Below are positions 3,720 to 56,757 of a stretch of 64,000 bases of DNA, in pieces. The notes under the pieces are model-generated. The model did not search any database, was not told the DNA's origin, and saw nothing but the letters and a program-made list of their open reading frames with translations. The translations under genes and the position numbers were made by a program. Positions within the stretch are counted from its first letter, which is position 1, and every line of letters starts with the position of its first letter. The DNA comes from Dimorphilus gyrociliatus (Eukaryota; Animalia; Annelida), in NCBI GenBank assembly GCA_904063045.1, contig CAJFCJ010000019.1, positions 1,813,700-1,877,699 on the forward strand, given 5' to 3'.

Positions 3720-6290
<2,571 letters not shown>

Positions 6291-31739: not shown

Positions 31740-34530
31740 ATGATTTTTATTATACATCTTCTCCTCTTCAACTATGCCATAGGAGTAGATATTAGAATGC
31801 CTCAGGGTTTGACTTATGAAGAATTTCTAAGGTGCAGAGGTCTGCCATGCGAGGACTTTCAGAAGAAACAAGCCGCAATATCTCAAATAAACAATTTATT
31901 AAAAGTAATATCTTATTTTTAAACAAATATTACACTCTGAAATATATGCTGACACTTTCTTAATATAATAAATAGGATACAAACTATGAGGAAAGATCAA
32001 CTGTCAGGTTCAATTATACTTCAGAAGTTTTAGACGGCTGTGTCAGATTGAACGCAAGGCAAACTCAGAATTTAGTAATTCATTTAAGAGAATTGCAAGA
32101 AAATCAACAAACTAGAAGGAAAAGGCATACAATTAATTTTGATAAATATGGAAATAGAAAATGGCGAGTGACTCGAATTCAGTATAAAATTGAAGAAGAT
32201 TACAGTAAGGAACATTCTTTTCCTTAAATAAAATACAACAAAATTTTTCTCTTAATCATTAAAGATTTGTTCATACTTGTGGTTTATTAGTTTATTGTGA
32301 ATTTTCTTTCCTTTGAAATAGCTCAAGAGTACATTACGAAGCTTGAACAATCCCTGAGACATATTGAAGATAAAACTTGCTTCACTTTTGAACGTGTTGC
32401 CAACGATGGTATCGTCAACGATGACCATATTATATTCTCTAACGAGGAAAAAGCGTAAGTATAACCAGTTTCAATCTCAGGCGGGTTGACTAATTGGCTT
32501 AGAAAAAATATAAATTTTGAATCAGCTCTGCCTTTAGCACGACGTAGCTAAAGACAATCTTTTTCTTTGTGTTATTTAGGTGTTGGGCTTATATTGGTAG
32601 GGTAGCTGCAGGCTCTTATCCTCAACTGATTAACCTACATGAAAGATGTATTGATTTTGTAAGTGCTTGGAGTTTTAATTCAATTACTTTTCATGAATTT
32701 TTTCCTTCTTCCTGCCTGTCTTTTCTTTGTATGAATGAAAATGAATCACTTCCATGTTTATATTTGTCTTTTCTCTTAGTTCGGCATTCCCGTTCACGAA
32801 GTTATTCATTCGTTAGGATTTTGGCATCAACATCAAAGACCGGACAGAGAGAATTATATTAAATTAAACTGCGATCTAATTAACGGTGGATGTGAACACG
32901 ATCAGATGAAGATACCTAATGACGTAAAAGAGCCTAGTATACCTTATGATTACAATTCTGTGATGCATTATTCAGGATTTTCAAATGCTCGGGATAGAAG
33001 TAGGCTGCACGAATTGACAATTAAAGCATTAGATAAAGGACATCAAAAAGCCTTTGGTCAAAGGGTGGAAATGTCCTTTTTAGATGCGAAATTAATTCAT
33101 AACGAATATTGCCAAGCAAAATGCAACAGCAATCCCCCTAATTGTCAAAATGGGGGATTTCCTAATTCGAAAAATTGCGCTAAATGTATATGTGCTGATG
33201 GCTTTGGTGGCAGTCTATGCCAGGATGTCGCTCCTAGTACAACAGGATGTTTTAATAGAGGCGATATTGTATTGGGAATAGGAGAGGAGAGAGTTATAAA
33301 CACTCCAAATTACGGGACCGGCTACAAATCTGGAGACAAGTGCAACTGGAGGATAAGCGCTCCACCTGGTTATCAGGTCAAAATAACATTTGATTCGAAT
33401 TTTCGAATTTATTGCTATAAAGCTCGCGATGATTCTGGATTATATATAAGGGCGTGTCTTTATCATTGGGTTGAAGTAAAGTATGACTACGACTTGTCCA
33501 AAAATGGTTACCGGCTATGTTGCGAAAGTCAACCAAAACCAATAACATCCAAGGGAAGAATTATGGTAGTCGCTTTTCGAAGTTTAGAGGAGAGGCGAGG
33601 CCATTACGTTGGATTTAGAGCTCGTCTTTCTACAGGTAGATTGTTTGTTTATCATGTGAAAGGTTCCCTACTATTTAAAGTATTTTCATAAAATTTAGTT
33701 AGAGCTGACGGTCAGCCTGTCGAACCAACGAAAGAGCCAACAATCGCCCCCACAACTAAAACAACTACAACGACTACTTTGCCTACTACCACAAAACTTC
33801 CCTCAACAACACCTGACAATGGTGTCCGCTGGTCTGAGTGGAGCGATTGCTCATTCAGATCGTGTCAATGTGGTGGCTGCGACTTTCAGTTTCGATTTCA
33901 CATTTGCCGTAATCAGTATGACCAATACGAAGCGTAAGATAATCATACCTCGATTCTCTCTTATTCTTCTCTTTCCTTCTTATTTTAATATCGGTTTATT
34001 TGTAATTTAATTAATTTCGATTTTCTTACTTTAAACAATATCATTCAATTACTAATTTAAATTATCCTGACAGATGCTATGGTGAAAGATTTGGACTAGA
34101 GATGAAGAAATGTAATGATGAAGAGAGAATGTGTGGATCTTCAGACAAATATCCTATTTTTATTGGAAAGCTCTATTATCAGTAAGTAGTAATATATTTA
34201 CAAAAAAACCCCACTAGGGTAAATTTACAGAATGAATTATTTAAATTAACCTTTTATCTATCAAGACAATGCTCAAGATGCTGTGTAGAGTTTAAGGAAG
34301 TGGCGGGCCGTTGCGTGAAAAGACAGAATGTTAATTCTCTGACGCAAATAAATAATAGAACTGACATCCCAGAGGAAGCTAAATTTAATGTTGACAAAGC
34401 AATTCTCGAGTATAATAAGAAGGGCATTAAAGTTACACCAAATAATGCTAAAACTTTAAACTTTCATTCTTTTTCATTGATTTCATCAATTGGTTTTGTA
34501 TTATTAAGCTTTTTGCTAATTAGTAATTAA
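31740..34530 (+). CDS. Astacin metalloprotease: signal-prodomain-astacin-EGF-CUB-Thr-rich linker-TSP1-Cys tail-hydrophobic (GPI-like) C-terminus
   Basis: Signal MIFIIHLLLFNYAIG; furin site RRKR; HEVIHSLGFWHQHQRPDR; Met-turn SVMHY; EGF, CUB, TSP1 WSEWSDCS..CGGC; ends ISSIGFVLLSFLLISN*. Confidence 0.9.
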
Positions 34531-35406: not shown

Positions 35407-38400
35407 ATGGCGAAGAGACCTTCTATTTGGATTGATAAAATACAGATAGAGGTAAGAATTTATCCACGAAAACAAAATAAACTAACATTTCGATTATAAT
35501 TTTTTTCAGAATGTCAGCAATTTCGATAAATTTGAAATAAAATTAAAACACTACTTAAATGAACAACTTCGTGACGGAAACGTACGTTCTTTAAAAAAAG
35601 AAAACGATTATGTAATCGCAACATTTGACAGGAAAATTGGTAATTGTATATGTTTTTCGTATTTATCTTATTGTTTCTAAATAGTATACTATTCTTATAT
35701 AAACGATCTATTCATTATTCAATAGATTATAGTATTCTCTTGACGTCTGTTAGAGCAAATAACGCTCCAGAGGAGATTGTTGTGAGGTCCAGGAAAAATC
35801 TATTTATTCAACCTTACAGAAAAAAATCCGAAGATGAATATTGCAACAGCGATTCAGATATGTCAACAACTTCTACATCAAGTAGTAAAACACGGAAAAA
35901 TTTTAAGAACAAAAACCGTAATTCTCCTAGAAACGAGAATTTGTCAATAGATTTGAGTTTATCACCGCATCGGTTACAGTTAGCAAAACAGTTGCACGCT
36001 GATAAGATAGAAGGTGATAAAATAATAATAAATGGACAAAACGCTTCTACGATGAAGATGGATTTATTGGACGCATTATCAAAAATTGTAAAAATACCAG
36101 CAAATATACCAGATGATTTAGAATTATCAAATGAAGGTTTACACGGATTACTTCGAAAAACCACCGAAATTTCTTATATTGACACTGTTATGATCGACAT
36201 ACACAATAATATAATTGCTTGGAATATGGAAGATGTCAGAAAATTTCAAGATTATATTAAGGAGAATATCACAAGTGAAAAATCAGAAATATCCGTTGAT
36301 CATTGGGAGAATAATGATAAACTTGATGCAAAAATAGCTTATTTAAGAGAAAAGTATAAAGTATGCTTTTCAAAACTTGATAAATTCATCTACGTTCACG
36401 GATTAAATGATTCACCAAAAATTGTAAGAAACGAGTTGGAGGAATATTGGAAACAAAATGCTAAAGTTCAGATAATCTACAAAGTTGAAAACGATTTAAA
36501 TTATACAGTTTTAAAGAGATATTTCAAAGATGATATTGGAGGTATATGTGAAAACTCTCCAATAAAATATGTTGATAATCTTAATGAAATCCAAATCAAT
36601 GGAATCGGTTTGAATGAAAAACAAATAAAAAGTCAATTAAAGCAATTTTCTTCCAACCTAGCTGAAGAGAAACTAGAAAAGAGTTTCTATGGTTTGTACT
36701 TTTACATTAGATCAACAAGAAACAATATATAGTATGTTATAGGTTTGAAAAACTATCTCGGCTCCGAAAAATTCAAAGCAAATTTAACTTTAATTGAAAA
36801 TAATAACTGTTGTGTCATTGATACGGCTTCTGGTAATTCGACTAGGGAGATACCATCAACATCTGACAATAGTGAACACCAATGTGACGATTCGGATGGC
36901 AGTGATAGCGATGAAGATGATAGTGATGATGAAAGTAATACTCCTACCGAAAATCCTAATAGAAAACAAATTGAAATTATTGCCGAAAAAGGAAATATCG
37001 TCAAATATAAGGGAAAGGTAACTATCTTTTTTACCGCCATTCAATAAAATTCATTCGTAATATTCATTTTATTTACTAAGGTTGAATTGTTGATTAATAA
37101 CATTGCAAGTAAAGATAAGAATATTCTTAAGGGTGGGAAACTAAGCGAAACTTTTGTTGCGGAATTCCCTGAATTAAAAGCTGTACCAATGGTTGATCAC
37201 GATGATTATATTGCTTCATCAAAGATTAACGAAATTACAATCTGTCATGCAAATATCACTAAAATAGACAAAAGAGATGCAAAAGCGGTAATTTTCTATT
37301 TTTTTACTAATGAATATTTATAAACGGATTACTAATGAATAGATTATATTTTTAGAGCATTCGTTATTTGGGTAATACTATTAAAAGTATTCTAGAATTT
37401 GCCAATAAAATTGGAGCACAAACAATAGCCCTTCCTCCTATTGGCACTGGGAAAATATGTGGCTTTAGGGAAAGTGTAGTTGGTAATACTATACGTAAGG
37501 CAATAAAATATTATAATCGAAAAAATTCAAACACAACCATCAAGGTTCAGTTTATTTATTCTCTTGTTTTAACAATGGCTATTAACTTCTTTCATTATCA
37601 AACTTTAGAAAGTAATAGTTGTATCGTATAGCGATGATCTCCACCAAAAAATGATGGAAAAGCTTGTAAGGAAAAAAAGAACTTTCAGGTCGAAGACCAA
37701 TATCACAAAAACTTCTTATAATCGACCTACTATAGTATTTAATATAGTTGGTAGGGGAAAGGAATCAACCTCAAATGCAAAATCACAATTACAACTCTAT
37801 TTGTCAAGAATTTGTTATACGGAAACTTTAGAAGAGTTCAAAGAAGTTCAATGGACTGATCTTAAGGAAATTGAAGATAATTATGTGAAAGCAAAGCTAG
37901 ATAGTAATCGTGGTGTTTTAGTTATAAGTGGAATTGAAAACTATGTTGAAAGAGCTTCAATGAAAGCTCAAAAAATCCTCATGAAAGTTAAACAGAAAAT
38001 ATCTAATGAAGCTTCTTCCTGGGATGAAGCAGCGAAGATAAAGGATAAAGATAAACGTTTAAAGGTAAACTTGGCTTAACTTTTTCTTGAGAAAGCAAAA
38101 ATATAAATTTATATTGACTTTTCTTGAAGAGATATGTTGAGCTAAAAGATTGCATACCAAGCAATTGGAAGAATTTTAAAAGTAACTCAGGCATCTCATC
38201 ATTGTTGTCAAGCGATTATTATAAAGTGAATATAGAAAAGGAAGATCCAGCCCACTTTAAGTAAATGCTAGTTTATTTATAAATACAGTTTAAAAGATTA
38301 TTGTTTTCTTCTTCTAGAAATATGAAAGCGTTCGTTGAAAGTTTATGGCAATCAAATTTATACGGCCATGGAAACGATGCTAGATCCAATTCAAAGAGAA

Positions 38401-39056
38401 AAGCTGAGATGAAAATAATGAAAATTCATAGAATTGAAAACAAAAAAGTCTATGAAAAAGTACGATTTTGTTGTTTTTAAATGTTTTCCTGTATTATCAC
38501 AAATTTTTTTAACAAAAAATAGTTCACGGTCCATCGTTCTAGTATTATTCAAGATGCTATTTCTGGACGAATAACGGAATACAAACCAAATCCTGAGATT
38601 CAAACTCGAAAAAGAACGGTAAATGATTTAATTCCGGAAATTAATGAATGTCTCTTGTTTCACGGGGCACAAAAAACAGTCATAGATAAAATAATTAAGG
38701 AAGGTTTTGACTCGAGATGTTCAACCAATAAAGGGTTATATGGAGATGGGTTATATTTTGCTGAGGACCCAACGAAAGCTGATCAATATGTGGGGGATGA
38801 CAGTAAAGGAAACATCCTCTTATGCAGAGTTGTGATGGGGAATGTGTTTACCGCTAAAAAATCAATGAGCAATTCCAAACGTGGTCCTTGTTTGACATGT
38901 CAGCACGAGGGAACTTGCTTGAAACATGAAGGCTTCTATGATAGTGTCGTTGGTTCTGTTAAAGATGGGGGAGTCTCTCTTCTTTTCAGAGAGTTTGTCA
39001 TTTACGAAAGTCATCTAGCCTATCCCGAATATGTTATATCGTATGATAAACCATGA
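35407..39056 (+). CDS. Macrodomain-PARP gene A (PARP14/15-like architecture: RRM/KH-like N-terminus, macro, ART domain with H-Y-E)
   Basis: Macro motifs LINNIA..GGKLS and IALPPIGTGKICG; ART motifs FHG, GDGLYFAEDPTKADQY, FREFVIY..AYPEYVISY; multi-exon. Confidence 0.85.
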
Positions 39057-39223
39057 TATCTTTGTATATTTTAAAATACAATCTTGAAGCGTAAATTATT
39101 GTTCTGTTTTCTATGATTACTATGACTACCATGTATGAATTATATAACCAGCAATGGTTATAATACAATAGCAAATAGATACTATTGAATGTTGGAATTT
39201 TGCTGAGGTTGAAGGACTGTAAA

Positions 39224-42200
39224 ATGATTATAAAATGTTTTAAACCCGAAAGTCCTATTAAAGATCTATCGGAAACTAGTAATAAATCATTGAGCATAAA
39301 AAATAATTATCCAGGTTAGATGCAAATACATAATACAGTATAACGTTAAAAACTGAATTGTCTTAGGTTTAGGCGAATATTTTTGCAGTGATCGAATTGA
39401 AACTGTATTAAAAGGTGTTGCCAACGATTTTAACTGTGAAATAAACGTTAAACTTGATCTGGAAGAATGTAACTGGGAATTAGACATTCTTTTTGCAAGC
39501 TTAAAATCCTCTATACGAAAAGTTTGTATGATATTAATAATTTGCTATATAATTCTATTTATATATTCCATTTCCGCAAAACGAATAGGCCAATGTCATC
39601 ATTGGAATTTTAGACAATGGAACAATAAGTGAATCAATAATAAACTGCTTTCCTAACCGCTTTGAACATGAAATATTTGACTCGGAAGATAATTGTTACT
39701 ATGCTGATAAGACATCAATACATTTCATTGACATAACATCTATCGAAGAATCTTTTTTAAACTCCCATTTTCAAGTCTGTTTATATGCTTAAATAGTAAT
39801 TTTTAAGAGTAAGTATATTCAACATACAGAAATCAATGATAAGGATTCTTGAGAAGGTAAAGATGGAAACGCAGAGAGTTCTATTTCTTATATCTGACTT
39901 TGAAGAAAAATTCGATTGTTTGACACTTGCGAAAAGTTGGAAGAAAATAACGATAGATTTTCGTAGAAAATTTCCAGAGTCTCCATTAAATGTCAGTATG
40001 TTATATTTCTTTGACAAACTACTTATTTGAATTATTTTACATAGATGTTCTACTTTCTGTGCGAAAAGTTAAGTACTTTTGAGACTGTAATGAAAACTCA
40101 GGGATTTGGTATTGAAATTAATTGCAATGTACCTGAAAAAAAGCTTCCTCTTCTCGACAACAAACTAAATTCATTAATAGAAGATAATACTGCGGGCGTC
40201 GTATTTGATTGTAACGAGAGTGAACTTGACAAACTGAAAGAGTTGGAAAATGAATTTATTCGATTCAAGCATAGTTATCATTCTACTGAAAGTATAAAGC
40301 TAGGATATTAATAGTTCTTTTCTTTATTTAGGTCACGAAAAACAAACACAAGCATTTATGGAAACTTCCAAAGTATTACTAATAGGAGTTACTAAGTATG
40401 TTCAAGAAGCTTTAGAAAAATTACAGAATGTGATTGAAGCAGATTTACCAATTAATAAATATAGTTTGAAAAAATACTTTATAGAGTTAAAAGATAAGAA
40501 TCTTTTTGATTTTCTTAAAGATCATTATAAAGATGAATTGGACAGCTTTTTTTATGATACAACATATCAATTTAACGAGAATACTCTACAAATTGAATAT
40601 ATGGGTAGTGAAATTATGAAAAAATCATTCCTTATTCAACTTGAAATATGGAAACAAAACTTGTACGACACTACTTTAAGCTATAGACTTTATAGTTTGT
40701 AGTTTACTATTGATTAGCCAATTTAGGAATTAATTGAATTTTTATCAATAGATCTATTCGGATATTTAGGAAGCGCTGAAGGAAGTCAGCATCTTAAAAA
40801 TGTTGAGACAAAATATGGTTGCCTAATCAAAGTTGATCATTTTAATTATTCAAATAATTTTTCCATTAAAGTCTATAATAAAGATATCACAAGTTTTTAC
40901 CGAAAAGGTTCATCTCTAATATATTTCTTACTTGTTATTTTGTTAATAAACAATGTAATTTTTAAACTTTTAGTGCGATGCTCTAATAAATAATGTGGCC
41001 TTGAAAGAAAAGCCATTAAGGTCATGTGGAAAATTATCAAAAACATTTTGTACAGTTTTTACAGAGTTTCAAGAAAAATATAACAAAGCTGAAGATTATG
41101 ATTTCTTTAGACTGTGCCAAATTTCAAAATGTCTTATATTTAATACAAAAATATATCATCATCGATCGGAGGAGGACTTTAATGTAAATAAATGGCTTAT
41201 ATAATAATTCTTTTCAATATAATTTACATAGTTTTCTCTTTCAATCTACTACAGACTTTTAGACAGACATTTCGGGAAGTTTTTGAATATTGTCACAAAA
41301 AGGGCATAAGATCTATTGGCATACCACCAATAGGCTGTGGAAATTTGGATTATGGATTAGAACGTGTAACAGATATTTTTTATGAAGAAATGATTCAATT
41401 TATGAAAAAGTATCCAAATTCAAGATTAAAGGTTAAAAAATCTTATTTTTGAATTGTTTAAATAGTTGTATTAAAGATTAGTATACTATTATTAGAAATT
41501 CGTATATACATCATTAACGAATCGTCCACGTTTTTTTGAACATTTTCACAATTTGATGGAAAAAGAAACAATGATAAAAATTTCTGCAAAATCTAAAGAA
41601 ACTCTAGATAAGATTGTAGGCGTGCTTAAATCCTTTATAAATGAACTCTACCATGTTGAATATATCTGTCTGAATGAAGAAAGTGATTTAAATTCGTTTG
41701 CTAATTTGGGAAATCTATACGTTAAAGTAACACCTTGGCAAAATGGTAATAAAGTCCTTTATTAAACGTTAACGTATTATATTTAATGGGTTTAAAAAAA
41801 AGGTTCGAATAATTTGAAGATTTTAACGATTGCTGGAATCAAAAATTTCGTTATGCAAGTATCAAAAACAGCAACAGCTATAGTTTATAAAGATGTGCAG
41901 CTGAAAGGAGGAGTGTTGTGGGAACATTTAAAAACTGAAAAAGATGCTAGAAAACGAATAAAGGTAAGTAGTTTCTTCTCCGTAGGTAATCGATATACTC
42001 CTAAAATCTGAAATATATCTCAATAAGCTTCGAATGATGTTAAATGATCATACACCGCCAAATTGGACAATACTTACTGGATCTCTTAATAATATAACAG
42101 GAGACGAATATAAACTAATAGATCTCTCTAATGACAACCCTAATATGTTTAAGTAATGTCTATTCCGTGGCTAATAATTTCTTTATTTTTGAAATTCTCA

Positions 42201-44038
42201 TAATTTCAGCATAATAAAAGACTTTATGAATTCTATTTGGAATGATCCTTCTCCTTTCCAGATAATAAGTTTTACTATAGATGTTACTGCAATTTATCAA
42301 ATTGAAAATCCTCAACTAATTAAATTGTATGGAACAAAGCATAAAAACTATTGCATGAAAATTCTGTCAAATCATCATATTTCGTATATCGAAACAAAAA
42401 GTGACAAATACCTGCCGAACGAATTGAAATCGTTACTAACCAAAGAAATCAATGAGCATTATCTTTTCCATGGTACCGACATTACAGCAGCAAATTCCAT
42501 TTCCGAAAATGGTTTCAATCATAGTATTGCTAAAACTGGTCTGTTAAATACACATATAACTTTCGCTCAAGATCCAAAAAAATCAGATATCTCTACATCC
42601 GATAATGTCAGATATATTTTAATATCCAGAGTAATACTTGGTGATGCTTTTAAAACTGACGAAAGTTTTGAAAGTGTATCAAGCCCACCTTGTAAAGTAT
42701 GCTCAAAAGCACTCTGTACGGTGCACAACGAAATGTACGATAGCATATTTGCTACGCACATGGAGATCGCTCACTCAGACCACATTGTTTATGATAAGGA
42801 TTTATGTTATCCAGAATTTATTATATCATATAAACCAAAAAATGAAAATCAAATTTCATTGAAAGATGCTATAGAAAAACCAATTACTTGGAAGGATTTT
42901 GATGAAGCAGCCGATCCAGAAGAGATCGGTATCAAACAGTTTGTTGATAGAAGTTTTGATTTAACTAAAGAGTTTTTAGAAAATGCTAAAGAAAAACCAA
43001 TTACTTGGAAGGATTTCGATGAAGAAACCGATCCAGAAGAGAGACTTGAGGTAAACAAAATTATCAGGCGAATTTGCTCTTATAAAGTATTAATGTAATA
43101 ATATTTAGATGAGAATTAAACTTTTCAATAATTATCCAAAAAATTGGACAAAATATTCTGGTAAAATAAATTCAAGTAAACCGAAACATAGAATTGATTT
43201 AAAAAAACATGATCTTAATACATACAAGTAGGTCATACAGTTTCATTTTGTGAATTAACTATAATTAACAATTCTTTTCTATTAAAGTCTAATTGAAAAG
43301 TTTATGAAAGATACTTGGAGAGATAATGAGAATGCTATAGCATCTTTAGATGATATAGAAATCTTGGGGATTGAACGGTCAGAGAATCCTAGATTATATC
43401 AACCTTATTCCTTTGAACATAAGAAATTTTGCGAGAGTTTGAGCTCTGATAAATTTCCTATGTTGAGCACCAAAACTAGTAAACATTGTCCAGTTGAATT
43501 GTCATCTCTTCTAGCGCCCGAAATCAATGAATTTTACTTTTTCCATGGAACGGATGCCGCATGTAAAAATAACATTCTAGAACAGGGATTTGGAATCAAT
43601 GAATTTTACTTTTTCCATGGAACGAATTATCCATCTAAACATGAGATTTTCCACCAGGGATTTGATTTTCGACTTGATGGAGTAGGTTACTATGGTATGG
43701 GTGCATATTTTGCTGAAGATCCCAAGAAATCTGATGGTTATACCTTCGGCCGTGGTACGACTATACAAGAGAAATATGATTTAAAAAGACATATCATCAT
43801 AGGAAGAGTAATACTTGGAAATTCAACTGTCGTCTCTCGAGATTTGAACCTCAAACGACCTCCCTGTAAAACCTGCAAGGCAAATGTATGTATGGACCAT
43901 AATGAATATTTCGATTCTGTTCGTGGAAATGAAGGCCTTGAAAATACTTTTTGGGAATACATTGTTTACAGTCTAACACAATGTTATCCCGAATATCTTG
44001 TAACTTACAAGCTGAAACAGAAAGAGAATTCTCCATAG
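39224..44038 (+). CDS. Macrodomain-PARP gene B with two tandem ART domains (degenerate B1, then H-Y-E B2); start uncertain
   Basis: Macro (DALINNV..GKLS; IGIPPIGCGNLDY); B1 42226-42840 has FHG but HITF and SDHIVY; no stop before donor gtaaac 43051; linker exon 43109-; B2 43304-44038 GAYFAEDPKKSDGY, WEYIVY. Confidence 0.75.
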
Positions 44039-45254
44039 ATAGTGAACTATCAAAAAATGGTAATTTATATATATTTTAACAATATGATGGGATGTTTACT
44101 TTATTCAATACTCGTCTTCTTTCTGGAGCTCGTTATTTTGTTTTGATTTCAAGTGAGTCGTGTTTATTTAGTGACGGATGATGTTTATTCGAAAAAAGAA
44201 ACAACAACATTCTGTTACTAAAATTCGTAAAGAAAATCTACAAAAATATTCAACACAAACGTTATGAATTCTAATTAACCCACTAGTATTATTGTTTGTC
44301 TTGGTTTATCGTAAACAGAAGATATTCAAAACCAAATACAAAGCGTTTATTCATTCTTTGTCGAATTTATAGATTTCTTCATCATTGACAAACTCGTATT
44401 CTTACCATTTTTCAACATCCATTTTGAAATTCAGTATGATACCTTCATCGCAATTCTCACCAGCTCAATACGTTCGTTCTTCCAAGCAATATACAAATTC
44501 CACTTATGATAAAGACTACTATTCATCTTTTCAACAACTTCGTTTATAATCTCGTCGCTGTTTAATTTGTCCGCTTCGTTGCCGACAATAAAGAAACTTT
44601 CCACTTTCAACAAGTTCGTCTTTAAATGGAATAGTGAAAGAGTATCGATATATTTAATAGGTTCCATATCTCTTAAAACATTTCTAGAATGCTGAACATA
44701 GCGAGGTTTCGACCCGAATCTTTTTCTCAAGATGTCTAATGCATAAAAATAGCCATCTTCGCCCAAAATATAACAATATTTTATGGAATCGTAAGCCAGA
44801 CCTTTGCAGTGTCTGCATAGATGACGTAACTTTTCGCTGTTAGTCAACCCTTTGTTATCGACATCCAACTTGTGTTTTACCAAAAACTTCTCAACGCGTT
44901 CAGCATCATGACAATCATCGTCAAGTTCGTAGCTATTCTCGTCTTCTAGGTCGTTTCCAATGCCGTTAAACTTTTCAATAGACTCGTTACTGCAGGACGA
45001 ACATTCAGAGCTCTGACTTGACAATTTCTTTTTCGAAGTGGATGGTGAATTCTTCATAATCACCATTATCTTATCAAGTTTATCGCCCAATCCGTCCATT
45101 TTTCTATCCAAGTTGGTATAAACCTCTTCAAGTTTCCTTTCCGCTTGAATTGAATAATCTCTAGCTCGTTTGATAGTATCTTGGCTTACATATGAACATG
45201 CTCCATTGCTTGTAGAATACAACTTGGTGTAATCATTATTATCATCAAAGATCT
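42926..45254. repeat. Segmental duplication copy 1 (PARP 3' exons plus gag), paralogous to 53363-55900
   Basis: Near-identical sequence from tcggtatcaaacag onward, including introns and intergenic DNA; differs by a 72-bp insertion, a ~205-bp deletion and indels after the PARP stop. Confidence 0.95.
44431..45254 (-). pseudogene. Truncated copy of the BEL/Pao-type gag ORF
   Basis: Central ~590 bp identical to 55232-55829; lacks the N-terminal ~100 codons; a ~205-bp frameshifting deletion removes both zinc knuckles. Confidence 0.8.
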
Positions 45255-45994
45255 GTTTATTACTGCTAGAAAATCATCAATTTTGCTGAGAGCTATAATT
45301 TTTATGGCTTTAGAAAATTTGTTTATCAGGCCATTTTTTAAGCCTACGAGAGAGGACAGCGTAGGAATTTTCTAAAAATTCTATTTACTTTTTCTTTTTT
45401 AGCCCTACAAACTTATAGTGAATCATTTAAATCTGCTACAAATGAACCATGTATTTTTGTTTTGTACCTCATTCTGCTTCAATAATTTGATATTAAATGA
45501 TTGTACACTGCGAAACGTCTAAAGAGGACAAAAGCTATAAGTAATATTTTTCCGTACGTAATTAGATTTAGAGTTTTAAACACTTGTTTTGAAAAATTTT
45601 CTATCTAAAGGAAGTTCTAAGTTTAGATATTCATCAGATTTCGTAAGATTTCGACACATGAACGGCCAAAAAAATAGATATAAAAGTTAAAACCAACAAA
45701 TAGATAGCATCAAATGCAAGATAAACGTTCGTCAAAAGAAAAAATTGCTTCTTTAACAAAAACTGTAAGTGATGTATTATAATAAATATTTATGATGTAA
45801 TGAAATAATGTTCTACCACCTAGTTTAATAATTGGAAAAAAGGTAATCTATTTGAATAATAACAGTCTCTTAGCTCACTGTAATCCTTCCTGAAAGAAAT
45901 GCAAATTATTCATAAATAGCTCATTTGTATAATATAGTATATATACTGTAATATATATATATATTACATATATTCTTTATATACTTACTATTTA

Positions 45995-48274
45995 GGAAGA
46001 AATGCGTTATGTACGACACAAATTATTGCGAAAAGAATCAAGAAAATTTTCCAATGGGCTCCTTTGATAGAAGAAAATTCACTCAAAACAAATTAGAAGA
46101 AGGCCTAGTAAGTTTAATAAAAACATTTAGAAATACTGTATGTATTTTTGTATATACTATATTAATTTTTTTTAAAAAAACAAAATAATATTAAAATAGA
46201 ATTATGAAATTGATGATTCTGCCAAAAACGACAAGAAGAAAGTACAGCATGGTGCTGGTGGTAGTAAGTATATAGTTTTCTTTTATACTCTGAATATAAT
46301 GCGTATCGTATGTTTTATTTTATTTAGGAGTTTATAATTTTTTAAGATCAATTAAGGGAAAGATATTCCTAAATGAATTAATGAATGAATATGATTGTCA
46401 AATTAAGGAGAAAACCATTAATTTTAAAAAAACTATTAATATAAATGTAGTAATGGAAAGTATGAGTAAAATGAAAGAAAAGGTAAGAAGGTATTAACTT
46501 TTTAATCTGGATTAGTAATTGGAAAGACATTTCAGTGCGAAGCTTTAATATACTACGAGAAAATGAGTGAATCATTATGTATTCGTTATGAAAATTTTGA
46601 TAAATTTAAGAATGTTAAAAATCCCCAAATACTTCGATTCAATATATCGAAACGACAGAATAAACAGGTAGAAAAATTGATTCAGTATATGAAGGCCTAT
46701 GTAGATTATGAATCATTTTTTGCCAGTGTTTAAATGAAGTTTTAAAAAAGATTTTAAAATGGTGCCATAGTAACAGTATAGAAAGTATTGGAATATCTCA
46801 AATGGGCTGTGAACAATGTTTTGGCCTTAGATCTGATCGACTTGCTCATATATTTTATCAGGAAATCACCAACTTTAATTTCTACGTAAAGAGTACATCA
46901 ATACACGTAAAAATTGATATATGAATATTTCAAATTGATAAATATTTAGCCTATTCCGTTCATTCAGGAAATTTTTATCGTCTGCAATACTGGAGATTAT
47001 GCGAAATACAATAAACTTAGAGAAATTGACAGGAGATGTACAATTTTTACTATTACGGCTAAAAGTCAAGAAAGAGTTGATAATGTAGTAAACGAATTAA
47101 AGCAATTGAGAGAGTCAACTATCATAGAAGAAATGATTATTCCTGAATATTGTGAATTAGATTCACTTGAAGAATTTGAAAATGAGAATACGAGAGTTAA
47201 GATTATGGGATTTAAATCGAAAAGGAAGATCGTTTTGGTAGGAATGGGAGATGAGGCTAAAAAAACTTGGCAGTTATTGACTCTATTCATTCAAAATACT
47301 CTAAAGGATTTAAGATCAAGTTTTACTCATAAAAGCCTAACTTCCGTTTCTAATCTTCAAGATAGATTGAGCGTTTGTGTTATGCTAGCTTAATTATAAT
47401 TATTTCTTAATACTTTCCTTGCTCTATATTTCCTGATTAGATCAGACTGGAATTAAACGAAAGGGTACCGCATAATTGGACAAAGTTTAAAGGAAATCTT
47501 AAAGATATTTTCAGTATAGAACCATACATCGTTGATCTATATGAAAAAGATAAGAGACAATTCGAGTAAGCAACTGTTTTTGAATATAAAATATTAATCA
47601 TATCACAATTAGTTAACTGGTAGTCTTTCTCTTGATCAAACAGCGAAATAAAGAACTTTTTCTTAAAAGCATGGAAATATAGCGATGGATTAAATAGTAA
47701 AATTCATATCTTAAGTATTAAAATGAATGAAAATCCCTGTTTATTTGAAAGGTATGCTTTAAAACATAAACAAATAATCAAAAGTTTAGCCAACAATACT
47801 AGCAAAATAATAAATAGCCATAGCACTGCACTTGATGAATACTTAACTATTGATATGGAATCGCATTTAACTCAAGAATTAAATGAGCATTATCTCTTTC
47901 ATGGAACCTCCGAAATTTCGGCTAAATATATACTTCACCAGGGATTTGATTATAGATTAGCAAATAGGGGAAATTTTGGTAAAGGAATTTATTTTGCTGA
48001 AAATCCAAAAAAATCGCATGCCTTTACTGAATGTTCAGAAAAAAAAACTATGTTAATATCAAGAGTATTATTAGGTAATAGTATATATTTGAAGACAAGT
48101 GAAAGAGATTTAGAGAGACCTCCTTGTGCAGTGTGTAAAGCAAGCTTATGCGAATATCATAATCAAATTTATGATAGTGTCATAGGATTATTTAAAGATA
48201 AAGAGATGGTAATTTATGACCCATTTCAATGTTATCCAGAATATTTACTCACCTATAAGATAGTCTGGATATGA
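45995..48274 (+). CDS. Macrodomain-PARP gene C (divergent macro, ART with H-Y-E); 5' end uncertain
   Basis: Macro C-terminal part SIESIGISQMGC at ~46760-46880; linker exon RVPHNWTKF; ART FHGT, GKGIYFAENPKKS, KEMVIY..CYPEYLLTY. Confidence 0.75.
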
Positions 48275-48859
48275 GTTGAAACGATAAAACAGTAAGAAAC
48301 AAAGTATTTGTCTTTCGAAGATAATCCTAGTCTTTTTAATAAAATATTAGATATTTGTATATATGAAGAGATAACTTTGTTTTATATTTTCTTATTAAAA
48401 CCGTACTTTCTGTTTTTGTTTATCAATGTCTTTTTCTTGAATAAACAATAAGCATAAAGACTAATTATTTTATAATTTCTTTCGTTGAAACAAAATGCAT
48501 GTCATTAGCAAGTATCAAAAATTAAAAGCACGTTGCTAGGTAAAATAACTTCAATCCAGCCCCATAAATTCAATTTTTGCAATAATGAGAGTATAGAGCT
48601 ATGTTTATATTTTTTATTGTTCTATACTTATAGGGATTGACCTACTTTGGTTTTCCCCTATAAAATCTTTTTCAATCAGTCCGAATATCTTGAAAGGTGA
48701 TTTGTGGAATTATAATCAAAAGAGAAAGTACAAAGGAAGATTACATGATCAACAACTTCTTACTTTCAGTTTCATTTTGCTCATATCTAGTTATGCAGTC
48801 GTTAAAAGTTTAGCAAGACAAAATGGATATTATCATAGGAAAATTGTATAAGCCAAATG

Positions 48860-51800
48860 GGAATGTATATGATATAGATATTGAAGAGAAATTTGAACAA
48901 AATGAAAGATATTTTTCAGTAAAAAAGAAACATTATGGTAGGTTATTCATTGTATTCATTGATATTTCTTTTATAGATTTATATATAATATGTTAGGCTT
49001 ATGCGAATTTCTGAAAAGTCATACAATTGCTGAAAATATATTACAAGATATAGCAAACGATTTAAAATGTTGCCTTCGATTGAAATACGAAATTCATCCT
49101 CAAAGAATTGAATTCGAACTATCTCGCAAACGTATGGAAAATTTAATTTCCGAGGTAAGCACTAAGTATACGGTGTCAACAGATTGACATTTAACAACTG
49201 CCTCTGTACCCTAATATGAGTTTGCTTTATTATTTATAACAACAATAATTTAAAGAGTCTTATCATATTGGTCTATTTGAATAGCTTCATATATCCTAAA
49301 TAGATACCTTCCTAAGCTCTCTCCTATTATGTTCATCTACTAGTAATTTCCTTCAAATACGCAAATTCTTCACTTGAAATCTTTGTTTTCATCATAAATA
49401 GAATAAGATAGATTGCTACATAATTTATAACAAATGAAAATTCTATATAAATTTATATTTATGTTTGAAAAATAGGATTAAATTTTTGTCAGGTTGATGC
49501 GCTGATCTGCATTTATGATTGTTACATTCCGAAAAAGATTGATCTTAACTTTCCAACAATTTCAAGAAAAATAAGCACCTCCATAGAACAACAAGTATAT
49601 CAGAACAAAACTATGATATACTTTTTGGATATTAGAAATTTTACACATAGTAAAGGAAAACATCTATTTAAAACCAAACTGTTAGAAATTCTCAAGAAGA
49701 TTGCATTCAAATATACATCAGTACTATTTCCTATTATGAATAGGACTAGTTTTATAAATTATTACAAAATTGCTAATATAATTCAAGAGTGTTTAATAGT
49801 ATTGGAAAAGAACTATCGTAATTTAAAGATCAAGGTAATTACTTTAATATTTTAATGACGATTAATAGCAGTAATCTATAAATAATAGAAACTCATTGTT
49901 TGGTGCGAATCTGCAAAAGTTTACGAACATGTAAAAAGGATTAAGGAAAGAGATGTAGAAATAGAATGTACCGTTTTTCAAACCAAAAATTTACCAATTG
50001 CTAAAGAACGTTTAAACTATTTTATTGAATCGAGTTGTGTTAGCCTTATTTATCAATTCTTCTCTCTCATCGACATTCCACATTTATACTCTTTGAATAA
50101 TGAACTAGTAAGATTAGACTCCTGTAAGATATGATCCCTTTTTATCTGTATTCTGTTATCATTAAGCTATTTACTATGTTTGAATAGATGAGATAATTAA
50201 AAAAGATACAAATCCCAGCTTTCAAGGGTGTCATAGAGTTACTTATGAAATAAAAATCACTGGAATTTCTGGTGCTTCCTTTGCTGTATTAAAGACTCTC
50301 AAAGAAATGATTTATGGAAAATATGTAGCAGCTATAGAAAAAGTAAGCGAAAAATATATTTTCTTTACTTTTTTTTTTAAAAAGAAAGTATATTCTTTCA
50401 TTGTTGAAGGATGAAAAAAATCTATCTTCAAATAAATTCACCGATTTAGGATCTAAAATTCTATTACAAGAACTAGAAGAAGAGGATATAAATATTGTAT
50501 TTACTGTTAAACCAACTGCGGTTTATGTGTTAAAAACAGTTGTTTTACAATCGATTGTAAATAATTTGAAAACATCCAAATGTAAAATTGATATTACTGG
50601 GAATAACGTTACTCTTACTGGCAAAGCTGGCAGTGTTAGATTTATTAGGAATATTATCTTTGATAAAATTAGTAATGCTCATAGCATTCATTTGGATCTG
50701 TTTGAACATCATGAATCGGTTTATAAAGTATTAGAAGCAGCCATTCAAGCAAGCGATTATTCAAAAAACGTTTCGATTGATTTCAATAAGAGTTGTCTTA
50801 TAAGTCTAAGCAAAGAAACTCTTAGAGATTGTTACGATTTCCTGAAAAATTCGATTGAAATAGAACAATACGACTATAATCATAATTTAATCGATCAAAT
50901 TGAAAAGTTTAATAGTCAAAACCATGGCCAAAATCAAGTTGCTGTGACGGTAATTGGTAACAATCGGATAACTGTTACCGGATGTTTCGAGTCGCCATTC
51001 TGGAAATTGTTTAATTCTGCAACCATATCGTCAACCTTAAAGAACAGAAAGACAGATTTTTGTTTCGTAAAAGTATGAAATTCTTTATTATTGTTACTTT
51101 AAACAAATTTTCCCATTTGTAGAGTAAAAAGAAACAAACTAAAGAGATGTGGATTGAAATTAAAAGACTTTTCGAAAAAGCAGTTGCAAATTCGATAAAG
51201 GTTATATCTATAACAGAAATCAGCAAATCAGCATCAGTTTTCCATTTCAACACAAAAATAAGTTCAGGTAAGATGAATTGAATAAAATTCGTTAATGAAG
51301 ACTAATTTTACTTGTTTTGTATATTTTTATAGCCGACATTGAAACGTTAGATTCTATCAATAGTTCTTTGAATGTTGAATTCTATAGGCGAAAGCTAGAT
51401 AATTCTTCAGATACTTATGATAAAAAGAGAATGATATTTCTTTCACTTGTCGAAAATAGTAGACATCTACTAGCCGATACGCAATATCTCGATTATATAA
51501 GGAAAAGTAGCGACTGCGATATAAAATACTTTAACGAAGAGACTAAAGATGAACTATTGCTTATTGGTCAAATTGATACAGTCATTGGAGAAAGAGATGA
51601 AATATCAAGGAAGATTAACTTATATCAAAAATCCGATTTGTCGTTTAAATGTAACGATGAAGACTATAAAAAATTTATTAGAAAGATTTTAGCATCGGAG
51701 GAAAAAGACTGGACCGAGTTTGTAACTGTATTGCCAGGGAATCGTTTGATTGGTTGGGATAAATCCAATAATATCAAGCAACAAAATTCAGCTGAAGAAG

Positions 51801-54436
51801 CTAAAAGCTATTTTGAAGCATGTACAAAAATTGAAGAAATCCCCGATAACGAGGGTGATTTTAATACGATAATGGAATGGAATAAATCACAAAATTTGAA
51901 AGATAAACTCTTCTTTGAAAAATCCAATAGTAAATTTAGAATTTTAGGTTGGAATTCTTCAAAAGGGTGGAAAGATCATGAAAGTATCTTTATCGGTTAT
52001 CGAATTAAACCTTTGTGTTTTCGTATATCGAAGACGTTTTATAAACTTTTAAAGAATAAATTCCAAAACCAAATTAAGCAGTTCTTTAATAATATACAAC
52101 CTTTTTTTGATGACAAAACTTGTGAAATTAAAATTGACTGTTATCAAAAATTAAAGGAACCTTTTGTAAAGCTGTTGAATAAATGGGAAGCAAGTATGAA
52201 GAAACGTGTTTTGTCTCATCATCATTTCGGTTCGAGGACTATTTTTAATTATAAATAGCTTTTAAGATATTTTTTATTATCAATTTTCTAGGTCTATTAA
52301 GTCATTTGCAAACGAAAGAAGGTGAAGAACATGTAAACTCAATAGAAAAGACATGGAATTCTTCTATCAACTTCGAAGTTGATGATGAATCATCAAACTT
52401 GAACATTATATTCGTTGAGAATGAAATTACATCAATGAATGATAAAGTAAGCATTTAATATCATATTCTTAAATTACAATAATGATGTTTTTCTACTAGA
52501 CTATACAGTGTGACGCTCTGGTAAATAATATAGCCGTAATGACCGACGATTTATCACAGGGAGGTTCAATTTCAAAGGCATTTTTGAAAAAATTTCCAAG
52601 AATTGCAACACTGGAAATGAAATCATATCGAAATATAAAAATTACGGAATTAGAGCAATTTAAAATAATACATACAAGAGTGCAACACCATAATGATATC
52701 ACTAAAGAAAAGGTAAGTATCCCTTTTTCCCTAGCCAGATATTTTGTTAATTTAAATAATTTGGTTTTTCTTATCTAAAGGATCTTATCTCGTCTTTGCA
52801 AAATGTACTTTCTTACGCTATTGAAAATAAATTAACCAGTATAGCACTTCCGCCAATAGGATGCGGCTATAGTCAGTATGATCCAAGGATTGTAGCTCAT
52901 TATATGTATCATAGTATAACAGATTTAAAGTATAAGTACACAGATATATCGCTAAAGGTATTTATTAATTATTCTCAATTCTAACAAATTGATATACAAT
53001 ATATATTTCTTCAAATAGAAAGTTTTTATAGTATGCCTGAGTGGAGCTGGTCACGTTTTGACAGAACCATTTAAAGCTATTGAGGAGAGATCAATAAAAG
53101 TATGTATATATGCCGAAAAGGATGAGAATATTGAACGTACAACAAAAGCTATACAATCCTATATTAAAGAGCAAGCAATTGTGAAAAAGATTAATCTAGA
53201 AAAGAACATTAGATTGAATTCTGTGGAGAATTTAGAGAATAAATATGTAAAAATTAAACAGCTAAGAATGAGTATATATAAATACTTGTATACTTTATAG
53301 TATTTTCTATGTTAATTTATATCTATTTTCAGTTAAAACTAATGAACAATTCATGGAAATTGTCGGTATCAAACAGTTTGTTGATAGAAGTTTTGATTTA
53401 ACTAAAGAGCTTTTAGAAAATGCTAAAGAAAAACCAATTACTTGGAAGGATTTCGATGAAGAAACCGATCCAGAAGAGAGACTTGAGGTAAACAAATTTA
53501 TCAGGCGAATTTGCTCTTATAAAGTATTAATGTAATAATATTTAGATGAGAATTAAACTTTTCAATAATTATCCAAAAAATTGGACAAAATATTCTGGTA
53601 AAATAAATTCAAGTAAACCGAAACATAGACTTGATTTAAAAAAACATGATCTTAATACATACAAGTAGGTCATACAGTTTCATTTTGTAAATTAACTATA
53701 ATTAACAATTCTTTTCTATTAAAGTCTAATTGAAAAGTTTATGAAAGATACTTGGAGAGATAATGAGAATGCTGTAGCATCTTCCGATGATATAGAAATC
53801 TTGGGGATTGAACGGTCAGAGAATCCTAGATTATATCAAGCTTATTCCACTGAACATAAGAAATTTTGCGAGAGTTTGAGCTCTGATAAATTTCCTATGT
53901 TGAGCACCAAAACTAGTAAACATTGTCCAGTTGAATTGTCATCTCTTCTAGCGCCCGAAATCAATGAATTTTACTTTTTCCATGGAACGAATTCTGCATC
54001 TAAAGATAAGATTCTCCACCAGGGATTTGATTTTCGACTTGGTGAAGTAGGTTACTATGGTAAGGGTGCATATTTTGCTGAAGATCCCAAGAAATCTGAT
54101 GGTTATACCTTCGGCCGTGGTAAGACTATACAAGAGAAATATGATATAAAAAGACATATCATCATAGGAAGAGTAATACTTGGAAATTCAACTGTCGTCT
54201 CTCGAGATTCGAACCTCAAACGACCTCCCTGTAAAACCTGCAAGGCAAATGTATGTAAGGACCATAATGAATATTTCGATTCTGTTCGTGGAAATGGAGG
54301 CCTTGAAAATATTTTTTGGGAATACATTGTTTACAGTCTAACACAATGTTATCCCGAATATCTTGTAACTTACAAGCTGAAACAGAAAGAGAATTCTTCA
54401 GGCACGAAAATTGAAAGGAAAAATAGTTTACCATAA
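48860..54436 (+). CDS. Macrodomain-PARP gene D (long PARP14-like: degenerate macro, KH-like repeats, macro, ART with H-Y-E); 5' end uncertain
   Basis: Macro CDALVNNIA..GGSIS and IALPPIGCG at ~52500-52950; linker exon YPKNWTKY; ART FHGT, GKGAYFAEDPKKSDGY, WEYIVY. Confidence 0.8.
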
Positions 54437-55900
54437 ATTTATAGTGATCTATCAAGAAGCGGTAGATTCTTTATCAAAAGAGACCTATTATACTTAGGTA
54501 TCTATATGTATTTTAACAATATGATGGGATGTTTACTTTATTCAATACTCGTCTTCTTTCTGGAGCTCGTTATTTTGTTTTGATTTCAAGTGAGTCGTGT
54601 TTATTTAGTGACGGATGATGTTTATTCGAAAAAAGAAACAACAACATTCTGTTACTAAAATTCGTAAAGAAAATCTACAAAAATATTCAACACAAACGTT
54701 ATGAATTCTAATTAACCCACTAGTATTATTGTTTGTCTTGGTTTATCGTAAACAAACAGAAGATATTCAAAACCAAATACAAAGCGTTTATTCATTCTTT
54801 GTCGAATTTATAGATTTCTTCATCATTGACAAACTCGTATTCTTGCCATTTTTCAACATCCATTTTGAAATTCGGTATGATACCTTTATCGCAATTCTCA
54901 CCGGCGTGTCCTTGTTCGTAGCATATATTGCACGTTTGGTGAGTTTGTATGAAATTATTCTGCTTAGTTGGGCTCAATCGTCTAAATTTCGTACAAGTAT
55001 TGATTTCATGCTCCTCGGACATGCAAAATATACAATGAACTTGCGATCGTTCCTTAAGATTCTTCAATTCGTAGTTAAGAAATTCAATTAGAGACTTGAA
55101 AACAACCCGCTCGTTACGTTCGTTCTTCCAAGCAATATACAAATTCCACTTATGATAAAGACTACTATTCATCTTTTCAATCACTTCATTTATAATCTCG
55201 TCGCTGTTTAATTTGTCCGCTTCGTTGCCGGCAATAAAGAAACTTTCCACTTTCAACAAGTTCGTCTTTAAATGGAATAGTGAAAGAGTATCGATATATT
55301 TAATAGGTTCCATATCTCTTAAAACATTTCTAGAATGCTGAACATAGCGAGGTTTCGACCCGAATCTTTTTCTCAAGATGTCTAATGCATAAAAATAGCC
55401 ATCTTCGCCCAAAATATAACAATATTTTATGGAATCGTAAGCCAGACCTTTGCAGTGTCTGCATAGATGACGTAACTTTTCGCTGTTAGTCAACCCTTTG
55501 TTATCGACATCCAACTTGTGTTTTACCAAAAACTTCTCAACGCGTTCAGCATCATGACAATCATCGTCAAGTTCGTAGCTATTCTCGTCTTCTAGGTCGT
55601 TTCCAATGCCGTTAAACTTTTCAATAGACTCGTTACTGCAGGACGAACATTCAGAGCTCTGACTTGACAATTTCTTTTTCGAAGTGGATGGTGAATTCTT
55701 CATAATCACCATTATCTTATCAAGTTTATCGCCCAATCCGTCCATTTTTCTATCCAAGTTGGTATAAACCTCTTCAAGTTTCCTTTCCGCTTGAATTGAA
55801 TAATCTCTAGCTCGTTTGATAGTATCTTGACTAACATATGAACATGCTCCATTGCTTGTAGAATACAACTTGGTATAATCAATATTATCATCGAAGATCT
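53363..55900. repeat. Segmental duplication copy 2, paralogous to 42926-45254
   Basis: Direct sequence comparison. Confidence 0.95.
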
Positions 55901-56198
55901 CTTCATCATTACTAGAAAAACTTTCATCGAGCAAATATTCAGGATAGTCATCAATTTTTTTGGAATTAGGACTTTTAGCGGTCAACTGCACTTCTCCCAA
56001 ATCTGCCAAATCGTTAAGTTCAATTTCACTGGACATTTTCTTGACCTTATCAATTTCTTCCAGTAAAACTTCTTCCTTAATCACGTCCAATCCGTTTAGA
56101 TTACGCGTACGAAATGCTCCGTCGATAGAAGCCACTGCTTCTTGAATTGCGTCTCTCTTTCTCGCTAAATCTTTAAAATCTAAACTTTTCTTAGACAT
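54792..56198 (-). mobile_element. Stand-alone BEL/Pao-type retrotransposon gag-like ORF (intact, ~468 aa from ATG 56198), no pol or LTR seen
   Basis: DUF1759-like segment EKLRHLCRHCKGLAYDSI...ALDILRKRFG and two CX2CX4HX4C knuckles (CIFCMSEEHEINTC, CNICYEQGHAGENC); stop without downstream protease/RT. Confidence 0.75.
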
Positions 56199-56757
56199 GT
56201 TCTCGGAGTCTTTCAACGTTAACGGGATTGTGTTCTGTCTAGACAGTTGAACTTTATATTCAAATCTGAGAGTGTGGCTACTATATATATCTTTACTGAG
56301 TACTAATCAACTTTTTATTACATATTAAACAATTTTTAAGAAATACCAGTTTTCTGGAAATATATAGTTATATATTAGGAAAAAGTATCCTCATGGCAAA
56401 CAATTGTCATAAAAAAAATTATGTAGCATATGACAACTGGAGAAAAAATTTGAAACGTTTCATTTGCATAAAAGTAATTTTCTAAGCGCCATTTTGATTT
56501 GAATTTTTGGAAGCAATTCTTCTTATCCAGTGATGCTTTATATATATCTAGATTCTAAATTTTCTTAAAAGCCAACCAGATTTGTCATTCAAGTTGTTTA
56601 TAAAGTATTTCAACAAAAATGTAAAAATTTTTAAAAAGTCGCGATATTGTGTTCACTAGAAGTTCTTTTTTTTTAAAATAAAACTATATCTCTACAATTT
56701 TATCACAGCAAACTATATTTTATGATTAAAGCATGAAACAAACAATGACAAACTTTA

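Follow-up and report, generated by a model that had tools for sequence, protein, structure and literature searches.

Replacement-biased divergence between two copies of a macro-PARP catalytic module in the annelid Dimorphilus gyrociliatus

In vertebrates, the rapid evolution and turnover of macro-PARPs are a hallmark of antiviral defence, and almost nothing is known of this process in invertebrates. PARP15 originated as a partial duplicate of PARP14, and positive selection has acted on the catalytic domains of both PARP14 and PARP13 (Daugherty et al. 2014, PMC4038475). The work on PARP14 and PARP15 also applied the ratio of nonsynonymous to synonymous substitution rates (dN/dS) between recent paralogues (PMC4038475). 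In this article, a stretch of 64,000 nucleotides (nt) from the annelid Dimorphilus gyrociliatus (GenBank assembly GCA_904063045.1, contig CAJFCJ010000019.1, positions 1,813,700 to 1,877,699), referred to as the window and numbered from its first letter, is analysed for a PARP catalytic module that occurs twice, as copy B in the gene DgyrCDS11740 and as copy A at the 3' end of the paralogue DgyrCDS11738. The coding differences between the two copies change amino acids almost without exception, and their distribution is examined here with regard to selection and to its competing explanations.

The locus resembles the vertebrate PARP14/PARP15 system in combining macro and PARP catalytic domains and in its turnover by tandem and partial duplication. 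Unlike that system, it belongs to an annelid and is represented by one genome with no series of orthologues, its catalytic domain carries a His-Tyr-Glu (H-Y-E) triad and lies nearer to tankyrase, and the partial copy is fused onto another paralogue, unlike PARP15, which is a separate gene. Selection in vertebrates is strongest in the macrodomains, whereas the macrodomains are not duplicated in the D. gyrociliatus block. Like this locus, PARP13/ZAP is a putative immune gene with a PARP-fold domain that changes fast in amino acids (PMC4038475). The PARP13 domain, however, is catalytically dead, whereas copies A and B keep the triad; what looks dead here is the catalytic domain that DgyrCDS11738 already had. 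Tankyrase (TNKS1/2; PDB 4krs, 4tkg) provides the best match in both sequence and fold and has the same H-Y-E triad, but it differs from the macro + PARP architecture found here, which is without ankyrin or SAM domains. A further parallel is offered by the primate L/M opsins and by RHD/RHCE, duplicates that are homogenised by gene conversion while selected differences are retained. As in those pairs, introns and silent sites of copies A and B are nearly identical, amino-acid differences persist and the identity is mosaic; unlike them, the copies differ at ~21 codons as opposed to a handful of tuning sites, and the A/B pair is known from a single genome. The A/B pattern is classed here with the rapidly evolving duplicated macro-PARPs.

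The duplicated block, delimited by self-BLAST and alignment, spans 42926 to ~45313 in copy A, where the right edge fades, and 53363 to ~55969 in copy B; it comprises ~2.4 kb at 97-98% identity, with the copies 10.4 kb apart. It contains the 3' part of a linker exon (exon X; 42926-43050 in A, 53363-53487 in B), a 58-nt intron, exon Y (43109-43227 and 53546-53664), a 60-nt intron, exon Z with the catalytic domain (43288-44038 and 53725-54436, the domain itself at 43304-44038 and 53741-54436, all on the + strand), a 3' flank, and most of an open reading frame (ORF) on the minus strand that resembles gag. The three-exon model X-Y-Z is in frame with GT..AG introns, and the introns are of typical size for a species whose median intron is 66 bp (PMC7854359); the genome paper makes no mention of PARPs (PMC7854359). 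Copy A is the derived copy because copy B has its native context, namely upstream exons of its own, a macro domain and a complete gag-like ORF of 474 amino acids, whereas copy A is truncated at both ends, carries deletions of 37, 35 and 4 nt in its 3' flank and has a broken gag. In the deposited protein P0001 (DgyrCDS11738), which thereby has two catalytic domains, copy A is joined in frame to the last exon. Homology beyond the block consists of ~50-70 nt of decaying identity on the right side and is absent on the left. An uncollapsed haplotype was ruled out, as the copies differ in flanks and gene context.

Copy A contains an in-frame tandem duplication of 72 nt (24 codons), which the first-pass annotation had not mentioned, and the comparison of the copies depends on how its two units are treated. 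Unless otherwise stated, the first unit (u1) is skipped and the second (u2) is aligned to copy B, a register that covers 915 coding nt over exons X, Y and Z. In this u2 register, exon Z differs between the copies at 19 codons, all of them replacements, with no codon differing silently only; the 21 nt differences correspond to Sd 0.5 and Nd 20.5 at S=136 and N=524 sites in the Nei-Gojobori (NG86) scheme. Eight of the changes, written from B to A as S85Y, A86P, D89H, K90E, L92F, G101D, E102G and K108M, form a cluster (43629-43698, + strand) between the catalytic His81 and the motif G-x-Y111-F. Exons X and Y contribute one replacement each, at 42973 (F/L) and 43193 (I/L), and the two introns differ only at 43060 and 43252. 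The PARP coding total is 23 differences in 915 nt, distributed 11/11/1 over the three codon positions. The first-pass annotation had counted 18 all-replacement codons in the PARP exon, eight changes between His and GxYF, two replacements in the upstream exons and two intron differences; each of these counts is recovered by codon alignment, the nineteenth codon being the last one shared, at 44033.

The deficit of silent change was evaluated against the observed mutation spectrum, under which 4.9 silent changes are expected (P = 0.003 for none, P = 0.023 for at most one) and 6.6 third-position changes are expected with one observed (P(<=1) = 0.004). An AT-rich mutation bias as the cause of the third-position deficit was ruled out, because the deficit persists once conditioned on the spectrum; GC content is ~30% in the window, 0.26 at third codon positions (GC3) and 0.43 at first positions (GC1). 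In pairwise likelihood-ratio tests (GY94 F3x4), the dN/dS ratio omega is unbounded for PARP in the u2 register and omega=1 is rejected (2dlnL = 7.06, p = 0.008), whereas for gag omega = 0.14 (p = 0.0035 vs omega=1), and the silent-to-replacement contrast between PARP and gag is significant by Fisher test (p = 0.0001-0.003). Nonsynonymous PARP sites changed at 23/734, compared with 4/590 for silent, intron and flank sites together (odds ratio 4.7, p = 0.0014), and the comparison of PARP nonsynonymous sites with all non-PARP sites gives p = 0.026. The sequence comparison thus supports a rate of amino-acid change above that of local neutral sites, with all p-values nominal, since they derive from two sequences of one genome at a locus picked post hoc and are uncorrected for that choice. 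The replacement-only pattern is real and nominally significant, and it is also fragile.

The assignment of the module to the PARP catalytic family is firm, with PF00644 matches of 55.9 bits for copy B and 53.9 bits for copy A against a cut-off of 26.7. The closest PDB chains are those of tankyrases (E = 6e-12), followed by PARP12 (3e-9), PARP15 (1e-7) and PARP14 (4e-7); the closest proteins to the domain are uncharacterised PARPs of invertebrates, and orthology with PARP14/15 is not supported. The AlphaFold2 (AF2) model of copy B, with a mean predicted local distance difference test (pLDDT) score of 89 and a predicted template-modelling score (pTM) of 0.85, retrieves tankyrase-2 in Foldseek (E = 1.8e-14, TM 0.64-0.75), consistent with an ADP-ribosyltransferase (ART) fold. 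The predicted triad residues H81, Y111 and E194 show no variation across the family alignment, copies A and B included, and the catalytic residues H, G, Y and E of copy A are untouched by the changes. The macro-PARP architecture is evident for P0002 (Macro at 45.2 bits together with PARP) and borderline for DgyrCDS11738, whose macro match reaches 21.5 bits vs a cut-off of 22.

Where the changes fall is informative as well. Changed positions have a mean column entropy of 2.89 bits, vs 1.99 bits for unchanged positions (Mann-Whitney p = 0.002; 79 homologues), and of the 38 columns conserved at >=90%, copy A has changed none; simple decay of copy A would not spare conserved residues in this way. 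At the sites that can be polarised (D89, L92, K108, G186, I191, G101 and T37), copy B has the common or ancestral state and copy A the novel one. This polarisation rests on distant homologues, because no close relatives were found: an exhaustive HMMER search recovered no relative above ~50% identity besides A and B, a full-protein search by region returned only the two copies themselves with no closer paralogue annotated, and exact-sequence look-ups of three ORFs in other assemblies yielded no independent copies or alleles. In the AF2 model of B, residues 85-94 form a helix after the His strand, and four of the five helix changes (85, 86, 89 and 90) map to the side of it that varies; copy A retains the conserved helix residues I91 and G95. 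By homology to tankyrase, the eight-change cluster aligns with this helix and the donor loop (D-loop) of the donor site for nicotinamide adenine dinucleotide (NAD+). In tankyrase, we take the helix after HG[ST] and the D-loop to form the wall of the adenosine subsite of the NAD+ donor site. The first-pass annotation had suggested an arms race acting directly on the catalytic cleft; mapping of the sites on the model of B and onto tankyrase does place them on the donor-site wall, at the 85-94 helix and D-loop, whereas a symmetric race does not agree with polarised changes that fall on copy A. A virus-driven arms race would be an analogy to the vertebrate macro-PARPs.

Several observations weigh against selection as the cause, in addition to the nominal status of the p-values, and a first group of them concerns the tandem duplication. 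The 72 nt cover the strand with the catalytic His and the following helix; u1 lies at 43523-43594 and u2 at 43595-43666 (both + strand), and the B counterpart at 53960-54031. Both units match B exactly over their first 30 nt. Over the last 42 nt, u2 differs from B at 5 of 42 sites, all replacements, whereas u1 differs at 11 (26%), with 5 of the 11 at third codon positions and ~2.5 silent. The two units differ from each other at 15 sites, so both diverged independently from a B-like unit. A divergence of 26% over 42 nt, within a block otherwise 0-3% diverged, cannot arise by ordinary substitution, and u1 therefore shows that a non-standard mutational or recombinational process has operated within exon Z, 35 nt from the main cluster. 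Neither the window nor a set of 153 related proteins yielded a donor for u1 or for the residues specific to A. At 4 of 11 sites u1 matches PARP#1, the catalytic domain resident in DgyrCDS11738, as often as expected by chance, and conversion from paralogues within the window was ruled out, these being 35-41% identical and sharing no A-specific residue. Only the u2 register yields the replacement-only counts: if u1 is paired with B instead, the probability rises to P = 0.14, and if both units enter the count, to P = 0.07; without the eight-change cluster it is P ~0.03-0.05. Four adjacent double substitutions are found among the 44 A/B differences (43347-8, 43412-3, 44467-8 and 44535-6); they exceed the expectation for independent hits, and such multi-nucleotide events inflate dN/dS tests. 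The rate comparison, moreover, presumes a single mutation process across the block, on which the clustering of differences casts doubt. The insertion itself also counts against a functional copy A, as 24 residues are added to its NAD+-binding core and 20 of them are predicted to be looped out, so that activity would be uncertain. The AF2 model of copy A (pLDDT 85) builds u1 into the core and leaves residues 95-114, most of u2, as a loop at pLDDT < 50, with the insertion effectively an extension at the start of the D-loop; this placement follows the multiple sequence alignment and is not decisive on which unit is structural. The first-pass description of the positive-selection signature as strong was accordingly an overstatement, since the comparison is post hoc and involves two sequences, and its significance hinges on ignoring the hyper-diverged u1.

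The gag-like ORF, which had been regarded as a built-in control, turns out not to be a clean one, since it is under purifying selection of its own, has higher silent divergence, differs at indel and junction edges only and is broken in copy A. The copy A fragment (44354-45313, - strand) is 5'-truncated, being without the first ~104 codons, and a 205-nt internal deletion (B ~54903-55107) shifts the frame and removes the CCHC knuckles; the C-terminal piece has one in-frame stop. The six silent codon differences given in the first-pass annotation stand, and its three replacements become 3-4 in the firm part and up to 7 according to where the fading edge is cut, with 3 more, one of them the stop, past the deletion. 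Two further points against the selective explanation emerge here. Silent divergence in gag is 7/149 (4.7%), ~7x that of PARP silent sites, introns and flank together (4/590; p = 0.002), and none of the 19 differences in the 3' flank and gag is farther than 125 nt from an indel or junction (19/650 near vs 0/550 far, p = 1.5e-5). A tract of 598 nt without any A/B difference (44586-45183), flanked by dense differences (p ~4e-4 under uniformity), may be a sign of gene conversion or of very recent origin. A hyper-diverged island at 44036-44062 lies between two copy A deletions (B 54400-54436 and 54465-54499 missing) where the C-terminal tail of A is shortened, and directly left of the duplication junction lies R' (42870-42925, + strand), an older or diverged copy of an exon-X motif (EKPITWKDFDE...) with 3-4 mismatches per 51 nt, more diverged than the block itself. 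R' is a junction scar or an older repeat; the motif, 51-65 nt long, occurs twice in the copy A gene (42870-42925 and 42991-43041) and once in B. The block is thus a mosaic, which may stem either from recurrent gene conversion with indel barriers or from an error-prone template-switching origin, and R', the island and the decaying right edge are compatible with either.

Taken together, these features leave three serious competitors to selection, because mutational, relaxed-constraint and conversion explanations gain weight from the non-standard mutation of u1, from differences that cluster around indels and from the small sample. A purely mutational or recombinational origin, through error-prone template switching or conversion from an unsampled donor with the silent deficit arising by chance, draws on u1, with its near-random codon positions beside 30 nt identical to B, on the hyper-diverged islands that accompany each indel (44036-44062, the edges of gag, R' and the right end where identity fades), on the concentration of differences near breakpoints and on the double substitutions; treating u1, u2 and the D-loop as a single patch puts 5 of 19 differences at third positions, which is near random. 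Such a one-off burst should, however, ignore codon position and conservation, and the changes spare third positions (p = 0.004) as well as conserved columns (p = 0.002). The bias in gag is also opposite to that in PARP, with a significant contrast between the two, and a single mutational burst cannot explain a replacement bias in one and a silent bias in the other. A diverged functional paralogue acting as conversion donor would have carried silent differences along, and the window and the 153 relatives yielded no donor. We regard this origin as unlikely, though deserving of attention. It appears quite improbable that copy A, as a partial duplicate, never functioned or is now losing function under relaxed constraint, with the 23:0 ratio a chance extreme picked by the scan: the 24-codon insertion in the fold core, the shortened C-terminal tail, the broken gag, the small counts (P 0.07-0.14 once u1 is counted) and the assignment of nearly all polarised changes to A would fit decay, but the ORF, the splice sites of both introns and all invariant residues of copy A are intact, conserved columns are avoided, and relaxation alone cannot lift the replacement rate above the neutral level, which it exceeds ~4.7x.

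An old duplication held at ~98% identity by recurrent gene conversion, in which indels block conversion and, in the PARP exon, only selected amino-acid differences survive, would likewise involve selection, though to maintain two specificities and not as recent acceleration. It would account for the perfect 598-nt tract between edges that are 5-10% diverged, for gag-edge differences that lean silent, as expected of old divergence under constraint, for the elevated silent divergence of gag, and for an R' more diverged than the block beside a right edge whose identity decays gradually. Linked silent sites should likewise escape conversion, yet none did so, even in the 24-codon cluster with eight replacements, and ~21 separately protected codons would be needed, which makes this history distinctly improbable. 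An assembly artefact, whether consensus or polishing errors or an uncollapsed haplotype, can be considered extremely improbable. The assembly was produced from pooled animals with PacBio PBcR, Quiver, Pilon and HaploMerger2, and cross-polishing of paralogues could yield some long identical tracts; the copies, however, have different flanks, lie in different genes and share 2.4 kb across a 10.4-kb spacing, substitution errors at 3% density that spare third codon positions would be an unexpected error mode, and over the 9.6-kb stretch compared every base of the window agrees with the deposited record. Since decay can neither raise the replacement rate above neutral nor spare conserved residues, and since one burst cannot account for opposite biases in PARP and gag, selection for amino-acid divergence of the newly acquired catalytic module, that is, neofunctionalisation of a young duplicate, is the best single explanation, and we hold it with about even confidence.

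A partial segmental duplication copied exons X, Y and Z of DgyrCDS11740, together with the 3' flank and part of the gag-like ORF, and the copy landed in frame at the 3' end of the adjacent paralogue DgyrCDS11738, whose own domain is without the invariant Tyr and Glu. Copy A, presumably expressed and folded, retains the H-Y-E triad and all conserved core residues and has changed at naturally variable positions, severalfold faster than local neutral sites, with the changes concentrated on the post-His helix and the D-loop, the outer wall of the donor site for NAD+; selection for divergence would be the driving force. The route may have been accelerated fixation after duplication, or selection opposing homogenisation by gene conversion. 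A more specific version is tentative and, in our judgement, rather doubtful: a degenerate DgyrCDS11738 would have captured an H-Y-E module that was adaptively re-tuned at the donor-site wall, partly by the 24-residue extension that arose when the His strand and helix were duplicated in tandem, with one unit diversified beyond recognition. The copy A exons might also be used through splicing as an alternative 3' catalytic cassette.

If an intact module was indeed grafted onto a degenerate paralogue and then changed only in amino acids around the donor site, this very young partial duplicate would constitute a natural experiment, amenable to study, on the evolution of ADP-ribosyltransferase specificity. 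It would suggest that spiralian PARP clusters join in genetic conflicts, a link with pathogens that would be drawn from the vertebrate parallel, and would represent an invertebrate case of modular, cassette-like innovation in an immune-type ADP-ribosyltransferase. If the differences arose instead by error-prone rearrangement, the locus would serve as a cautionary case in which indel-linked mutation clusters mimic positive selection in paralogue comparisons.

The two genes belong to a cluster of four macro-PARP paralogues, DgyrCDS11737 to DgyrCDS11740, arranged in tandem, head to tail, on the + strand over ~35.6-54.4 kb (35600-54436). Besides copies A and B, PARP catalytic domains lie at 38628-39056, 42226-42860 and 47702-48274 (all + strand); only A and B are mutually close, every other pair being 33-42% identical, and the cluster is an old local expansion within a very compact genome. 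The domain at 42226-42860 is the resident one of DgyrCDS11738. Its exon (42226-42925, + strand) belongs to an ORF at 42226-43098 that runs stop-free into the duplicated block, has a Pfam PARP match of 33 bits and forms part of P0001. In profile alignment, this domain has changed at four positions at which 80 family members show no variation (G107>N, G109>H, Y111>T and E194>D), and it is probably catalytically dead. Predicted proteins with 2-5 tandem PARP catalytic domains (P0003, P0005, P0062 and P0126), for example from Ptychodera flava and an ENA contig, were also encountered; the two-domain architecture of DgyrCDS11738 would therefore not be unique, unless these multi-PARP proteins are fused gene models.

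Exon Y is in frame in both copies, yet it is skipped by both deposited models, P0001 and P0002, which have the junction ERLE|FMKD. Its homologue in the paralogues is the PxNW region directly ahead of the catalytic domain, and the annotation has probably missed this exon. Within the catalytic domain, a PPC-x2-C-x4-C motif occupies B residues 163-174 (54227-54262), with C164, C167 and C172 conserved at >=90% and a His following in both A and B. The motif may bind a metal, and its position differs from what we take to be that of the tankyrase zinc motif. At position 193, beside the catalytic Glu, both A (43952-43954) and B (54317-54319) have Trp, vs the nearly invariant Arg of the family.

The intact gag-like ORF of copy B (54792-56216, - strand; 474 amino acids) is unannotated, and transposable element (TE)-like predictions were taken out of the deposited annotation. 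Its translation contains two CCHC knuckles (C-x2-C-x4-H-x4-C), and all Pfam matches are sub-threshold, including DUF1759 (E = 0.15, 12.5 bits, cut-off 25.4), so "gag-like" denotes resemblance to BEL/Pao-type gag and not membership. Homologues, sought also as a possible TE family of conversion donors, were not detectable in 5.8 billion proteins. The ORF is convergent with the PARP gene, with ~350 nt between the stops and no pol nearby, and it could be a domesticated or orphan gag-like gene. Elsewhere in the window, the neighbouring genes are ordinary ones: a DEAD-box helicase, SOS-like exons with PH/RasGEF-N and RhoGEF, a triple-VWA protein, and a pair of exons for astacin metalloproteases, of which one has a CUB domain; the neighbouring gene intervals are 4648-5868, 14407-17298, 25099-27021 and 27756-28544 on the - strand and 32906-33691 on the + strand.

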